Source: Lytechinus pictus (Eukaryota). Taken from it: a stretch of 64,000 nucleotides of DNA. The stretch's first letter is position 1. Every line of letters starts with the position of its first letter. Shown here in pieces: positions 11,495-64,000 of this stretch. A program made the position numbers and the translations under genes. The notes beneath the pieces are model-generated. The model made no database searches, was not told the DNA's origin, and was given only the letters and a program-made list of their open reading frames with translations. The stretch covers positions 69,130,001-69,194,000 of the forward strand of contig NC_087246.1 of NCBI RefSeq assembly GCF_037042905.1, given 5' to 3'.

Positions 11495-11579
11495 ATGGGG
11501 TATTTGGTGCCAATACATCTTCTTGTAACCCTCGTCTTGGTATCTGGAACGGTCTCAACGGATAAAGATGTGGAGACAG
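11495..11579 (+). CDS. First coding exon of an unidentified secreted or type-I membrane protein (MGYLVPIHLLVTLVLVSGTVSTDKDVET+G)
   Basis: Good start context CAAAATGG. Hydrophobic signal-peptide core followed by small residues. The 85-nt exon ends at a consensus donor ACAG|GTAAGT (phase 1). Too short for the supplied ORF track. Confidence 0.7.
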
Positions 11580-58484: not shown

Positions 58485-58712
58485 CACAGTGCTAAACATA
58501 ATTCAAACAACGCTGTTTAGTCTCACAGTATTTGTTTAAACAGTTTAAACAAGTGTTTAAAATCTTAAACAACCATGCTTAAATTATTGATAATTAAATA
58601 TTTGAATTTAAACTTTGTTGTTTAAGATTTTAAACACTTGTTTAAAATGTTTAAACAACTACTGTGCGATTCACATAGTAAACAGCGTTGTTTGAATTAT
58701 TTGTAACAGTCT
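58485..58712. mobile_element. Palindromic MITE
   Basis: ATAATTCAAACAACGCTGTTTA / TAAACAGCGTTGTTTGAATTAT and TTTAAACAAGTGTTTAAAATCTTAAACAAC / GTTGTTTAAGATTTTAAACACTTGTTTAAA. Confidence 0.75.
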
Positions 58713-58732
58713 ATCGCTTCTTTAAGTATAAG

Positions 58733-58758
58733 CATGGACCCTACTAAGAAGGGCCATG
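58733..58758. other. 26-bp micro-element CATGGACC...GGGCCATG with a perfect 7-bp flanking duplication
   Basis: GTATAAG at 58726-32 and 58759-65. Confidence 0.7.
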
Positions 58759-59677
58759 GTATAAGTGAATGTGAAGTTCACGTGGCCTAAACTTTTCCCC
58801 TTTATCTTGGAAAATATCTTGGTAAATCCAGATTCTAAATATATTTCAAAGATAAAAACAAGGGTAATGAATAATAGTCAACATTCAATCGTTTATTGCT
58901 TCGAATTATTAATATTGTGAATGCAGTTATGGCTTTAACCGTTTCTTTCATGTTGATTTTTCTTGAATGTTCATAAATATCTAGTGTGTAGGCCGACACG
59001 AAAGAATTTTCTGTCTAGTTGAGATGATCGTGCATTTATGCAAAGACGGTAGTCAAGCTACTTCCTCTCTTTGATCAAACTGAGTGTGGAAGCTCTCGCA
59101 ATTATTATGAAAATGTCACGTTCTGGAGGAAGAATTCTATCAGGGAGAATTTTATTGTTGAAGACACGGTTTTAACGTCTGTCGATAGAATAAGAAGCTA
59201 GGTATGTCTTATAAGCTGATGCGTTTTACAAGATAAGTTCCCATTAACTGAAATAATTATACGGCTACTATTTCTTGGAATGTCTTTTTACAGTTTTTTC
59301 CGCCATTGGATTTTTTTATCGTACAGAAGATGTTGTATTGTAGAACTCTCTGAATCAAAAGTCATGGTTCATACTCAATTAGAAATAATTGAATATTCAA
59401 TTTGTAATGAAATGACATACACTACTCAAAAAAAGTTAAGGACCACTTTTTAAAACGTACATAAAGATTTTATACAAGGTGTTTTATTTCTGGAAATACC
59501 TCAGTACAACTGTCCTAAATGTCCTTAAACACGCTGTAATCAATTTCACGCATGGGTGGTTTCAGTTGTTGCACAATGTCTCTCGCATCACTGCACATCC
59601 TGAAAAGTGGGCCCCGAGGGGTATCAGCTACCGACATGAAGTGGTAAAAACGAATGTCTGAGTGTCTTTCAGGCAGT

Positions 59678-60706
59678 TCAGTAACGAGTGTGACCACCTC
59701 CTGCAGCAATAACGGCTTCACAGCGCTGTCTCATGGAGCTGATGAGGCGATTGATGTCTCTGACGTCCAGTGCATCCCATGCAGCCTCCAGAGCCACACC
59801 CAGCTGCTGCAGTCCAAGTGGATGGACTTCGAGCTGCTCGAGACTCCTCCCCATCATGTCCCAGACGTGCTCTATCGGGTTTAAGTCCGGGGACCTCGCT
59901 GGCCACTCCATACGCTCAATCCCCTGGCCCTCAAGGAACTCGGTCACCACCCTAGCTCGGTGGGCACGGGCATTGTCATCCATGAAAATGATGTTTTGTC
60001 CCACATTTTCTGCAAATGGCACCACTATAGGTTCAAGGACCTCATCCCTGTACCTCACTCCTGTCATTGCTCCCCCTGGGACCACGTAGAGACGAGTACG
60101 GTTGGCGTAGGTGATGCCTCCCCACACCATGACGCTGCCTCCCCCATAACGGTCATGTTCTGCAATACAGGGGTCTGCAAATCTCTCTCCTGGTCGCCTC
60201 CAGACTCTCGAACGTCCATCATTGTGGTCAAGGGAAAATCTGCTCTCATCTGTGAACAGAACTCTACGCCATTGCTGTCTGGTCCATCTGACATGCTCCC
60301 GGGCCCAGTTGAGACGAATTCTTCTGTGAGCAGGGGTGAGTGGGACACACTGAGCTGGCCGTCTGGCATGCATATTGGCTCTGTGAAGTCGGTTACGGAT
60401 TGTTTGAGTGGAAACAATCACTCCAGTTGCTGCAGCGAAGTCATTGTTGAGGCGGCGTGCACTGTGAAAGCGGTTGCGGAGGCTGAGATTCGTCAAGTAG
60501 CGATCATCTCTAGGGGTTGTCGAAACTGGTCGGCCACTGCGGGGTCTCTCGGAGTATAGCCCTGTCTCTCGGTGTCTTTGATTTGCTCTGCTAATGACAC
60601 TGTGTGACACGCCCATCATTCTGGCTACTCTTCGCTGACTGAGGCCAGCTTCCAGCATCCCTAGGGCTCTGGCTACATCTGTTTCACTTAGGTGGTGTCT
60701 TGGCAT
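59678..60706 (-). CDS. Tc1-family DD34E transposase, intact, 342 aa from the first ATG
   Basis: Begins MPRHHLSETDVARALGML, with an N-terminal paired-like HTH and GRP motif. Catalytic motifs FTDES, MDDNARAH and SPDLNPIE, with 34 residues between the second D and E. C-terminus GGHTRY. The ORF-track start at 60721 is a TTG; the first ATG is at 60706. Confidence 0.95.
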   Translation of the reverse strand: MPRHHLSETDVARALGMLEAGLSQRRVARMMGVSHSVISRANQRHRETGLYSERPRSGRPVSTTPRDDRYLTNLSLRNRFHSARRLNNDFAAATGVIVSTQTIRNRLHRANMHARRPAQCVPLTPAHRRIRLNWAREHVRWTRQQWRRVLFTDESRFSLDHNDGRSRVWRRPGERFADPCIAEHDRYGGGSVMVWGGITYANRTRLYVVPGGAMTGVRYRDEVLEPIVVPFAENVGQNIIFMDDNARAHRARVVTEFLEGQGIERMEWPARSPDLNPIEHVWDMMGRSLEQLEVHPLGLQQLGVALEAAWDALDVRDINRLISSMRQRCEAVIAAGGGHTRY

Positions 60707-61101
60707 TGCTGTTGTAGGCAAGTTGTTGATTGTACAGACTAAAGACGGAAAATGCTTTGGAAGACACTTGTCTTATGGCCCACTGCAATGATGCCAGAGA
60801 CATCATGAAAGAACTGCATGTGTGAAATTGATGTCATTGTGTTTGATGGCATTCTGGACAGCTGTATCTTGGCATTGCTATTGTCAGCAAGTTGTTGATT
60901 GTAGAGACTAAAGACAGAAAATGCTTTGGAAGCCACTTTTGTACGAGCACATTGCAATGATGCAAGAGACATGAAAGAACTGCATGTGTGAAATTGATTT
61001 CATTGTGTTTGATGGCATCCTGGACAGCTGTATCTTGGCATTGCTGTTGTCAGCAATTTGTTGATTGTAGAGACTAAAGACAGAAAATGCATTTGAATCC
61101 A
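60698..61101. repeat. ~167-bp tandem repeat (2.4 units) forming the spacer of the Tc1 palindrome
   Basis: The unit TCTTGGCATTGCT...GACTAAAGAC.GAAAATGC...CTGGACAGCTGTA starts at ~60698, ~60867 and ~61033. Confidence 0.9.
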
Positions 61102-61102
61102 C

Positions 61103-62064
61103 AGCCAGAGCCCTAGGGATGCTGGAAGCTGGCCTCACACAGTGTCATTAGCAGAGCAAATCAAAGACACCGAGAGACAGGGCTATACTCCGAGAGACCC
61201 CGCAGTGGCCAACCAGTTTCGACAACCCCTAGAGATGATCGCTACTTGACGAATCTCAGCCTCCACAACCGCTTTCACAGTGCACGCCGCCTCAACAATG
61301 ACTTCGCTGCAGCAACTGGAGTGATTGTTTCCACTCAAACAATCCGTAACCGACTTCACAGAGCCAATATGCATGCCAGACGGCCAGCTCAGTGTGTCCC
61401 ACTCACCCCTGCTCACAGAAGAATTCGTCTCAACTGGGCCCGGGAGCATGTCAGATGGACCAGACAGCAATGGCGTAGAGTTCTGTTCACAGATGAGAGC
61501 AGATTTTCCCTTGACCACAATGATGGACGTTCGAGAGTCTGGAGGCGACCAGGAGAGAGATTTGCAGACCCCTGTATTGCAGAACATGACCGTTATGGGG
61601 GAGGCAGCGTCATGGTGTGGGGAGGCATCACCTACGCCAACCGTACTCGTCTCTACGTGGTCCCAGGGGGAGCAATGACAGGAGTGAGGTACAGGGATGA
61701 GGTCCTTGAACCTATAGTGGTGCCATTTGCAGAAAATGTGGGACAAAACATCATTTTCATGGATGACAATGCCCGTGCCCACCGAGCTAGGGTGGTGACC
61801 GAGTTCCTTGAGGGCCAGGGGATTGAGCGTATGGAGTGGCCAGCGAGGTCCCCGGACTTAAACCCGATAGAGCACGTCTGGGACATGATGGGGAGGAGTC
61901 TCGAGCAGCTCGAAGCCCATCCACTTGGACTGCAGCAGCTGGGTGTGGCTCTGGAGGCTGCATGGGATGCACTGGACGTCAGAGACATCAATCGCCTCAT
62001 CAGCTCCATGAGACAGCGCTGTGAAGCCGTTATTGCTGCAGGAGGTGGTCACACTCGTTACTGA
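61103..62064 (+). pseudogene. Second, 5'-truncated Tc1 transposase copy with an intact catalytic domain
   Basis: Lacks the first ~11 codons and has a 35-bp deletion between TCA microhomologies at ~61137. Otherwise nearly identical to the minus copy; differences seen are GRP>GQP, LRN>LHN and EVH>EAH. Confidence 0.85.
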
Positions 62065-64000
62065 ACTGCCTGAAAGACACTCAGACATTCGTTTTTACCA
62101 CTTCATGTCGGTAGCTGATACCCCTCGGGGCCCACTTTTCAGGATGTGCAGTGATGCGAGAGACATTGTGCAACAACTGAAACCACCCATGCGTGAAATT
62201 GATTACAGCGTGTTTAAGGACATTTAGGACAGTTGTACTGAGGTATTTCCAGAAATAAAACACCTTGTATAAAATCTTTATGTACGTTTTAAAAAGTGGT
62301 CCTTAACTTTTTTTGAGTAGTGTATAATTCAGATTCGGTTTTGAAAGTACCGGAGTCCTGAACTGCATTGAGCAGTCGTGCATGACGCTAAAGCACCACT
62401 GCTTATATGAATACATACCACGTCCCAAAGAAGCGGCACAGTCGTGACAGTGAGGAAATACCTGAGCGGCGATGTATTCTGCTTTCACTTCTACGACTAC
62501 TCTATACGCTTACGGCATTGTCTTCCGATCGACCTTCATTAACTGTTAACATCCAAAAACATCAATCTGAAGGACAGCTTCGTTTCCAGGGGAAATCGAT
62601 GAAAATCAAACTTTAAAAGTGTGGAACCAATACTAACCTTCAATGCTCAAGGTTAGAATTTGCCAGGCGTGTTCCATGGTCATGATGGTTTATGGTGAAC
62701 ATGTCAGGGGCATTGCTCGTTTTCTCCCCTTACCATTCTTTTACTCCTGACATACTTGTACATGAAAAAACGATTATTGATTTCGTACTTTTTATGGTGG
62801 AAGGAAATAAGAAAAGGGGGAACGAACCCAGATTTAACTACCGCTTTCTCTCCACTTTTCATGAATTTCTTCCATTAAAAGTCAATGATGATTCATCAAA
62901 ATGATTATCGATTTTGGACTTGACGTACATTGTAATGTAGGTCCTATATGTTGGGGAATGATGCATCAGGGGGAGTGGAGGAAAGGGGTATCATTAAAAA
63001 GGTGAACATATTCCCATTTTAAACAACCATTCATGAAAGAGCGAGAAATAATTATATTCCGCATATTAATTGAATGTTGTCACCACTGGATTAGAAAGCA
63101 AACACTGTAATTTTAATGACGCTTGATGTTGCATGATTTGACATCGTATTATAATATTTCAGGAAAAAAACGCTCTTAAAGTTTTGTGTTTGTATCTTTT
63201 TTTTAAATAAACGTTCAAACCATTTCCTACTCGGAAGAACTTTAAATACAGTTGCGACTTCGCATCTTTCTGTTGTTAAGAACACATTTTTTGGTGCATC
63301 GTTGCACCCTAGAGACCAGAAAGGTGCTTAAGGGGACCTGTAAATGGCGTTCACAAAGTTGCAGTGTGAAAGTGCGAAGTTGACCCCTTTTTCTTGGAGC
63401 GAATATGGAAGAAATTTACAGTGGTCACTATGGGTTCGGCGGTAGGCCTTTTTTAAAACAGGAAAGCAACTACCATGATTTCCCTGTTTCAATAAAATGG
63501 TAATCATCCCAAGGAGCTTCCTGAAGCATGCAAAGGAAACAGTATCTGTAGCCATACACTGTTCATACTACGGGAATGCATGAGATGTCGGTACGCACTT
63601 CAAATATTTTTTATGTTGCAAAACTGTCAAACTGATTTGTATCTTTCGCATTGATGTCAACCCAATCGTGTTTAGGTCGCAATTTATGTCCAATTACCCC
63701 AGGATCACGTCTATTTAACCGATTTTCGCTCTGTAATTAAAGATCAATATCTTACCTACAAGGTCTCCGTACGAGAAAGATGGCGATATAAGGTTCCAAC
63801 CATTATGAAGTGTTACATTGCAGTAATAGGAGATAACTCCGTCTTGAAATAAGGTGTCAGTGAAGGCAGATTGGGGTCGAAGTGGTGTAAAATTTGTCCT
63901 TGAAAATGGAACCCGATTACCTTGCCCATAAGTTTGTTATGTTCTATTTGGAAATTAGGTGTATGATGTTAAACTTAAGGAAGCTTTACATTGTCATTCC

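Follow-up and report, generated by a model that had tools for sequence, protein, structure and literature searches.

The window, that is, the whole 64,000-nt stretch of Lytechinus pictus DNA analysed here, carries a Tc1-derived element of 2903 bp at 59420-62322, which direct sequence comparison places between two TA dinucleotides. A repeat search of the window recovered two inverted arms, 59417-60607 and 61135-62325, each 1191 nt long and separated by 527 nt, and direct arm-to-arm comparison found exactly three mismatches between them (59826/61916, 60477/61265 and 60531/61211). An inverted repeat of 1.19 kb with 99.75% complementarity far exceeds what could arise by chance, and the sequences outside the two TAs, when compared directly, show no complementarity to each other. 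Ten other large open reading frames (ORFs) of the window gave no Pfam matches. No sequencing run that was searched contained the unique flanks of the element; the runs that matched its surroundings, from another species, share only a high-copy MITE at 58508-58715.

Members of the Tc1 family possess one 5′ and one 3′ terminal inverted repeat (TIR), whereas both termini of this element are the 3′ TIR. Relative to canonical genomic copies, the first ~213 bp, including the whole 5′ TIR (ref 1-213), are absent. The TA target-site duplication of the family flanks the window element and all other complete copies that were examined. The element is a rearranged Tc1 derivative and not a canonical member of the family. 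The features are collected in Table 1.

Table 1. Features of the foldback element in window coordinates; reference (ref) numbering of the Tc1 element follows L002:1287-3184.
Feature	Position	Strand	Basis
Left TA target-site duplication	59418-59419	.	TA on both sides in every examined copy of the 215/643-junction form
Long arm: near-complete Tc1 copy, ref 1897 down to 215, only the 5′ TIR absent	59420-61102	-	99.9% identity to canonical genomic copies over the span
3′ TIR, left end, ~194 bp; outer core GGACCACTTTT, inner inverted core GGCCCACTTTT	59420-59613	-	5′/3′ TIR alignment and motif scan
Intact DD34E transposase CDS of 342 aa and a stop codon (ATG at 60706, stop at 59678); private A-to-V change at 59826	59678-60706	-	ORF list, Pfam, catalytic spacing, polarised variants
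Upstream region with ~166-bp tandem repeats and TIR-internal-like segments; single-copy centre of the foldback	60635-61102	-	Repeat families D1 and D2, self-matches of the canonical element
Head-to-head junction, ref 215/214 to inverted 643/644, 1 nt (A) microhomology	61102-61103	.	Junction analysis; 26-nt junction word with 15 exact genomic occurrences
Short arm: inverted, 5′-truncated copy, ref 643 to 1897; private SNPs at 61211 and 61265	61103-62322	+	Arm comparison, polarised variants
Site of private 35-bp deletion, TCA microhomology	61135-61137	+	Deletion-spanning word occurring once in the genome
3′ TIR, right end	62129-62322	+	Repeat search and motif scan
Right TA target-site duplication	62323-62324	.	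Sequence comparison of copies

The long arm encodes a transposase with the hallmarks of the Tc1 family. Its helix-turn-helix region is present, the Pfam matches are DDE_3 (3.8e-19), HTH_Tnp_Tc3_2 (6.9e-19) and HTH_38 (2.7e-07), and the catalytic triad D153, D244 and E279 has the spacing of 34 that defines DD34E. The short arm begins at the equivalent of codon 11. An ORF starting at Met17 is kept in copies without the 35-bp deletion, as seen in L023, and has been removed by that deletion in the window element; an ORF search across the internal junction found no usable frame. The preliminary description of the locus, made from the letters of the window, had recognised most of this architecture. 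The same TA-flanked Tc1 3′ end at both termini and the missing normal 5′ end are borne out, with the element's coordinates exact; the arms of ~1.19 kb with about three differences, the one intact DD34E copy, and the N-terminal loss of the other through truncation plus a microhomology deletion likewise agree with our results. The position given there for the junction was off by one base.

The junction provides a marker for following the element through the genome. Sequence-level comparisons covered 60 loci, while genome-wide figures are coordinate-only pattern counts. The exact 26-nt word has 15 genomic occurrences, the window's own included, all at TA sites and with different flanks wherever both flanks were seen. 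Ten full copies, again counting that of the window, were examined; all are bounded by TA/TA, and their flanks all differ except in the segmental-duplicate pair L009/L010. Since the same junction occurs at 15 TA sites with differing flanks, the 215/643 form transposes as a unit, as the preliminary description had expected of an element with two identical ends. Furthermore, four copies (L033, L037, L042 and L045) make up a sub-lineage without one 166-bp unit, showing that this junction was inherited with modification and not formed repeatedly. Among structural features, the 35-bp deletion alone is private to the window locus; this deletion and three point changes are the later changes of the window copy. 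Predicted empty-site words for the window insertion and for the C7 copy had no matches, nor did the junction word in JGI metagenome contigs, and the external contigs encoding 99%-identical transposases contain canonical copies only.

These copies bear directly on two simpler accounts of the locus. In the first, two independent Tc1 insertions came to lie head-to-head and the intervening DNA was deleted, leaving a unique and immobile structure. The genome does contain head-to-head pairs, nested or adjacent (e.g., L054), but the identical junction at 14 other places, with different flanks wherever both are seen, contradicts this reading, which we regard as highly improbable. That the junction arose by nested insertion was likewise rejected, TA being absent at the internal breakpoints. 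In the second, a foldback or chimeric read was collapsed into the assembly. The window locus is indeed known from the assembly alone; on the other hand, its arms are asymmetric, with three mismatches and a 35-bp deletion between them, the sequences on its two sides are unique, unrelated to each other and bounded by a TA duplication, its junction is found again at the 14 other loci, and ~130 similar elements have proper TA/TA boundaries. An artefact is therefore scarcely credible.

Genome-wide word counts extend the picture beyond a single junction. The 5′-specific end occurs 130 times, the 3′-specific end 396 times, and the canonical continuity across 213/214 141 times. The 396 3′ ends set against 130 5′ ends thus correspond to ~133 two-3′-end elements versus ~130 canonical copies, i.e., the two classes are about equally numerous. 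On contigs C1-C3, 38 outward-facing 3′/3′ pairs in ~30 size classes were found, versus 24 unpaired 3′ ends, and no 5′/5′ pair appeared among the 100 5′ ends listed of the 130. A second foldback form, 284/607, has 26 copies. Breakpoints are many and different, with junction microhomology of 0-4 nt and filler at some junctions. Six other complete foldbacks among the sampled loci are all TA/TA, and the breakpoint pair was seen once among the loci in five of the six. The L054 pair consists of an almost full-length element, beginning at position 4, and, beyond some filler bases, an inverted copy starting at ~871-876. The 'killer' allele envisaged in the preliminary description is not supported as a singular locus, the window element being one of ~133 two-3′-end foldbacks with many breakpoint types. 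Copies of the family are 99.6-100% identical and their ORFs are mostly intact. Taken together, the window element very probably belongs, in slightly decayed form, to a mobile foldback subfamily of 15 copies within a very young DD34E Tc1 family, in which foldbacks would have formed recurrently and profited from a preference for the 3′ end.

Because the transposase encoded in its long arm remains complete, the window element may be autonomous, and ~400 bp upstream of the ATG, tandem repeats included, are retained. Alternatively, the foldback could be a non-autonomous passenger that is moved only in trans by the transposase of canonical copies, its own ORF being intact because it is young and not because it is used, and the 5′ TIR with any promoter therein having been lost. 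The absence of the first ~213 bp fits this account, as do the ~130 canonical copies with intact ORFs on hand, which are able to provide transposase in trans, and the ORF is already broken or missing in 2 of 15 long arms. In the ORF comparison of sampled loci, it is intact in 13/15 long arms and in 19/21 canonical copies. Against the passenger account stand the retained upstream region and the distribution of derived changes, which over the same 1256 bp number 22 in the long arms versus ~36 in the short arms; this is a weak trend compatible with selection acting on the coding arm or with a cis-preference for it. We consider passenger status a serious possibility, though somewhat short of an even chance. 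The arms also appear to exchange sequence: in 6 of the 15 copies a private derived variant, in one case a 13-bp insertion, is shared by both arms, which indicates that arms are occasionally homogenised by arm-to-arm gene conversion.

As to the origin of the mobile subfamily, its single founder was a copy without the 5′ TIR (from ref 214/215) fused head-to-head, across 1 nt of microhomology, to an inverted copy truncated at 643. The resulting unit, equipped with two identical 3′ TIRs, has since moved whole by cut-and-paste into new TA sites. Foldbacks were probably formed repeatedly, when two copies, or sister copies, became linked through end joining or template switching, and they may owe their success to a transposase that prefers a pair of identical 3′ ends. 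Precedents for such a preference are known. A Mos1 donor carrying the right IR at both ends exceeds the natural element 26-fold in activity, whereas with two left IRs it is 50 times less active, and Mboumar-9 and Sleeping Beauty show an end preference of the same kind (PMC4505599). By analogy, the mobile foldback subfamily may be at an advantage if a pair of matching 3′ ends serves the transposase as a better substrate. In the present family, TIR alignment and motif scan show no difference between the two kinds of TIR over the outer 34 bp and the inner core motif in both; any end preference would therefore have to come from positions 35-194. The 3′/3′ bias could also reflect a polar formation mechanism instead of end preference.

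A further-reaching model is that the self-complementary two-3′-end element is the family's main propagating form, made recurrently when two synapsed 3′ ends, from sister or excised copies, have their broken inner ends joined, and that each such element would combine three roles, as a source of transposase, as a substrate superior to the wild type and as a template for a long hairpin. We put this forward as a speculative and rather unlikely proposal.

The hairpin in turn raises the question of silencing. A read-through transcript of a two-3′-end element would fold into ~1.2 kb of double-stranded RNA (dsRNA), and it has been suggested for the window copy that host read-through yields such a transposase hairpin, from which small RNAs shut down the family in trans, as Mu killer does. 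The geometry is suitable, the near-perfect inverted duplication of transposase coding sequence (1191-nt arms, three mismatches) folding from either direction of transcription. Mu killer itself is a partial inverted duplication of mudrA that is read through from a flanking gene (PMC3440606), and read-through transcripts of C. elegans Tc1 form dsRNA that feeds RNAi (PMC3878927). With ~133 foldbacks in the genome, some are probably located in transcribed DNA. Nevertheless, transcription from a promoter of the element itself would be directed away from the short arm, and the hairpin therefore requires transcription from outside. An exon-1-like feature lies at 11495, where the preliminary description placed the start of a gene whose intron would hold the element; the element is 48 kb downstream, and no link between them was found. 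In three RNA runs and one DNA run of another species, reads matching the element show 95-99% similarity and carry fixed differences, and they include no joints at 61102/61103; the unique flank 58716-59339 has zero DNA depth and the flanks have no RNA coverage in these runs. Coming from a different species, these reads do not count against transcription of the window locus. Near-identical and mostly ORF-intact copies give no sign of effective silencing, the family having apparently been unsilenced recently, and the foldback forms themselves have been amplified, to 15 and 26 copies. We regard trans-silencing by the window copy as improbable.

The favoured reading, a mobile foldback subfamily, has several implications. 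The genome looks like the natural outcome of a preference for one end that mariner/Tc1 transposases have displayed in the laboratory: elements whose 5′ end has given way to a second 3′ end have emerged on many occasions, have been amplified as units and are now as numerous as the canonical copies, and the reciprocal 5′/5′ form was not seen among the listed ends. The duplicated end carries up to 1.2 kb of coding sequence, hence every such copy is a potential source of long dsRNA. The system connects end preference, recurrent rearrangement during transposition, homogenisation of a palindrome by gene conversion and possible self-silencing, and since the family is young (<0.5% divergence), each step can be read from the sequence and is open to experiment. 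Should the two-3′-end form prove to be the main propagating form, the family would possess an inherent boom-and-bust control, accessible to study in a natural population of animals.

Several known systems resemble parts of this one. In Aedes, Tc1/mariner elements gave rise to MITEs by microhomology-mediated miniaturisation (PMC3814204). Breakage and rejoining with short microhomologies, followed by amplification of particular forms, is common to both cases; the Aedes elements bear internal deletions, so that a 5′ and a 3′ end are retained but coding capacity is gone, whereas here an inverted fusion replaces the 5′ end. MITEs are non-coding, high-copy and under ~800 bp, while the window element has 2903 bp, an intact ORF and 15 copies of its form. 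A role as an intermediate in MITE formation, also proposed in the preliminary description, is conceivable but finds no support here, since no foldback seen was smaller than 1418 bp.

Galileo (PMC4168063) is a classical foldback element. The same class includes Drosophila FB, sea urchin TU and the palindromic Tc6/Tc7 of C. elegans. The likeness of this class to the window element consists in long inverted arms that form most of the element and in transposition via two equivalent ends. Classical arms contain no coding sequence and frequently consist of subrepeats, with long arms of non-coding tandem subrepeats in the FB/TU type; in the present element, the arms are the transposase gene itself, colinear with that of a canonical element <0.5% diverged, and tandem repeats are confined to the 166-bp units of the single-copy centre.

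With regard to dsRNA, inverted repeats in read-through transcripts of C. elegans Tc1 produce dsRNA that enters RNAi, the stem being the 54-bp TIRs (reviewed in PMC3878927), while the potential stem here is 1191 bp of coding sequence. Mu killer (Muk) of maize is a single locus for which siRNA production and heritable silencing have been demonstrated. The window form is multi-copy, mobile, from an animal and endowed with a complete ORF.

The closest counterparts are engineered mariner/Tc1 donors in which the preferred end is present twice, namely the Mos1 IRR/IRR '3Tet3' pseudo-transposons, Mboumar-9 IRL/IRL and Sleeping Beauty, which gave the best transposition in vitro (PMC4505599; PMC2642840). 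They too carry the same end, inverted, at both termini, and in the sea urchin 3′/3′ elements are abundant and 5′/5′ elements were not seen among the listed ends. Those donors are laboratory constructs in which only the ~30-bp IR is duplicated, whereas the duplication of the window type is natural, takes in as much as 1.2 kb of coding sequence and leaves an intact transposase in place.

The structure of the window element agrees in every part with the preliminary description, as judged by direct comparison of the arms, TA flanks, ORF, truncation and deletion, and is solid. The TA reported at both ends is present, and the arms, estimated at ~1.19 kb with about three differences, are 1191 nt long with exactly 3 mismatches on base-by-base comparison, the complementarity ending directly beyond them. 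The copy claimed to be intact, in the long arm, encodes HTH, HTH_Tnp_Tc3_2 and DDE_3 domains with the DD34E residues D153, D244 and E279. The short arm, said to have lost its N-terminus by truncation and a microhomology deletion, indeed starts within codon 11 and lacks 35 bp.

Features of the foldback, the canonical Tc1 and neighbouring sequence (window positions unless marked ref., numbered on the canonical copy; L-numbers are retrieved loci)
Feature	Position	Strand or arm	Detail
Element proper	59420-62322		From comparison of arms and copies
TA flanks	59418-59419, 62323-62324	left, right
Inverted arms	59417-60607 / 61135-62325		Spacing 527 nt (repeat finder)
Arm mismatches	59826/61916, 60477/61265, 60531/61211
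Transposase ORF	ATG 60706, stop 59678	minus, long arm	342 aa (ORF list)
35-bp deletion	61135-61137	plus, short arm	TCA microhomology at site
Tandem repeats	60635-61102		~166-bp units
MITE-like palindromic repeat	58508-58715		65-nt arms 58521-58585 / 58605-58669, 91% complementary
Exon-1-like feature	11495-11579	plus	ATG, 28-codon hydrophobic signal-peptide-like ORF, GTAAGT donor
Canonical 5' TIR			~194 bp
Canonical upstream region			About 400 bp, with ~166-bp tandem repeats
Canonical transposase ATG	ref. 611
Canonical 3' TIR			~194 bp
Private variant, L015	ref. 1456	both arms
Private variant, L034	ref. 1495	both arms
Private variant, L038	ref. 1686	both arms
Private variant, L045	ref. 1185	both arms
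Private variant, L046	ref. 1342	both arms
Private variant, L032	ref. 1266	both arms	13-bp insertion

The assembly searched (811.7 Mb, 368 contigs; window at C2:69130001-69194000) holds many canonical copies, 99.8-100% identical to the long arm and 1896 bp between TAs. Positions were numbered on one of them, L002:1287-3184 (1898 bases, including one base of each flanking TA). Its TIRs are 83% alike overall, identical in the outer 34 bp, and carry an inverted core motif at their internal ends. In this numbering the window element runs from 1897 down to 215 and then from 643 up to 1897, minus 35 bp, with one ambiguous A at the head-to-head junction (breakpoint pair 214/643). Transposase matches of 99% identity occur in only a few ENA and Logan assemblies; one relative is 89% identical, and all others, annotated as Tc1/Tcb-like, reach at most 59%. 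A search of 58900-62900 found about three-quarters of the element's 31-mers in low-coverage runs under at least 5 organism codes, so that a near-identical Tc1 is present in several labelled taxa, which could reflect a species complex or recent horizontal transfer; such 31-mers also occur in marine and echinoderm-associated metagenomes. A related species, organism F, carries a 95-99% relative transcribed on both read directions. The tandem repeats preceding the ATG differ in number of units between copies and hold segments 72-78% like the inner TIR; organism F RNA reads skip 176 bp there (60731 to 60908).

The copies of the 214/643 form show that a rearranged Tc1 with two 3' TIRs moves as a unit by TA-targeted cut-and-paste. 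By exact word count, a 26-nt word across the junction occurs at 15 genomic places and canonical continuity at this point 141 times. TA lies on both sides of all 10 copies visible from end to end, the window's included, and their flanks all differ, save for one pair, L009 (G000:C10:17459306-17462245) and L010 (G000:C10:17440612-17443551), which share identical flanks 18.7 kb apart. Already diverged by a few SNPs, this pair is a recent segmental duplication carrying the foldback. One 166-bp unit is missing in common from L033, L037, L042 and L045, which marks descent with modification from a single founder, not recurrent formation of the junction. Together, the differing TA-flanked sites and the shared loss strongly indicate some dozen transpositions of this foldback as a whole. 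The junction proposed as a marker of such movement thus recurs; the companion marker, a word across the 35-bp deletion, occurs once genome-wide, in the window. The window copy's private changes (the deletion, two short-arm SNPs and one long-arm Ala-to-Val SNP) came later. At L014/L015 (G000:C7:21210624-21215687), a 214/643 foldback with its short arm cut at reference 1060 is followed by 22 bp that match the right flank in reverse complement; next comes another complete 214/643 foldback, whose flanks are mutually inverted repeats.

Exact word counts across the genome gave 130 5'-specific versus 396 3'-specific ends, which implies that ~133 two-3'-end elements coexist with ~130 canonical copies. 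On contigs C1-C3, which supply the first 100 3' ends of the listing, 38 outward-facing 3'/3' pairs with under 4 kb between their members account for 76 ends and leave only 24 unpaired. Among the matches listed, these pairs range in size from 1418 to 3114 bp and sort into about 30 classes. The 100 listed 5' ends include no 5'/5' pair. Retrieved loci show at least 11 breakpoint pairs (e.g. 146/787, 49/824, 284/607, 132/816, 410/1108, 592/663). Six complete foldbacks with other breakpoints are all flanked by TA/TA, hence integrated as two-ended units; for five, the breakpoint pair was seen only once among retrieved loci. The 284/607 form was counted 26 times, across at least 12 contigs. Many breakpoint pairs together with multi-copy forms show that formation recurs and that several forms have amplified. 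Searches of open-access text yielded no description of a Tc1 family whose coding-length two-3'-end foldbacks equal its canonical copies.

Foldbacks may form by end joining of two copies, or of the two sister copies, after breakage on the 5' side of each; alternatively, synthesis may switch template. The junctions, with 0-4 nt of microhomology and occasional fillers, fit both routes, which are not separable in a breakpoint sample biased by the query used for fetching loci. Simple nested insertion is argued against by the lack of TA at internal junctions among the foldbacks analysed. At L054 (G000:C1:42880056-42882983), a nearly complete element with its 5' TIR, stopping at reference 4, adjoins an inverted 5'-truncated copy via a few filler bases; C3:4942435-4944849 and C3:4965520-4968565 look similar from coordinates. 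Such loci may represent foldbacks at an early point in their formation.

The strict 3'/3' bias may mean that the transposase prefers the 3' TIR, an attractive, unproven idea. Paired right IRs raise the activity of Mos1 26-fold over the natural element and paired left IRs lower it 50-fold, with similar behaviour in Mboumar-9 and Sleeping Beauty (PMC4505599), and the standard donors of PMC2642840 carry two 3' ITRs; this published work supports the preference in principle. If real, the preference must reside further in than the outermost 34 bp, as these are the same at both ends.

Copy-private derived variants are present in both arms of 6 of the 15 copies of the 214/643 form. Identical independent mutation is not credible, and these variants evidently arose by arm-to-arm gene conversion, a process known from other palindromes. 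In the 1256 bp common to both arms, arm-specific derived events number 22 for the long arms and about 36 for the short arms, a weak trend that is compatible with a degree of constraint on the coding arm. An undamaged 342-aa ORF is kept by 13/15 long arms and 19/21 canonical copies. In undeleted copies the short arm holds a 326-aa ORF from Met17 (e.g. L023:504-1484), destroyed in the window by the deletion. Residues 1-16, where the N-terminal HTH region begins, would be missing from the 326-aa product, which, if expressed by flanking transcription, could act as a truncated, perhaps interfering, protein.

Read-through in either direction would give ~1.2 kb of near-perfect dsRNA, and hairpin-type silencing has precedents in Mu killer (PMC3440606) and C. 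elegans Tc1 read-through dsRNA (PMC3878927). Self-silencing is attractive but unproven. Because the element's own upstream region faces away from the short arm, the hairpin requires outside transcription. The preliminary description judged that the element probably lies in an intron of a gene starting at 11495; no downstream exons of the exon-1-like feature were identified by the methods applied, and nothing links it to the element 48 kb away. Nor is a singular killer allele upheld, the window copy being one potential hairpin source of about 133. The element's flanks had no match among indexed sequencing runs. The raw RNA runs covering it come from another species, organism F, given 95-99% identity, fixed differences and zero depth on unique flank; they hold no junction reads. 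The family, with near-identical copies and mostly intact ORFs, shows no sign of long-ago shutdown, and foldbacks kept amplifying (15 and 26 copies of the two forms). The neighbouring MITE-like repeat is extremely abundant in organism F DNA (summed contig depth ~13,000), and its many different loose ends in that organism's RNA reads indicate transcription from many loci.

Both the end-preference and self-silencing ideas are directly testable. The window element works like engineered mariner/Tc1 donors with two preferred ends and looks like Mu killer, yet is a canonical member of neither. A standard Tc1 has a 5' and a 3' end, and the window element, having no 5' end, is not one. Classical foldback elements and MITEs have non-coding arms, and in this they differ from the window element.
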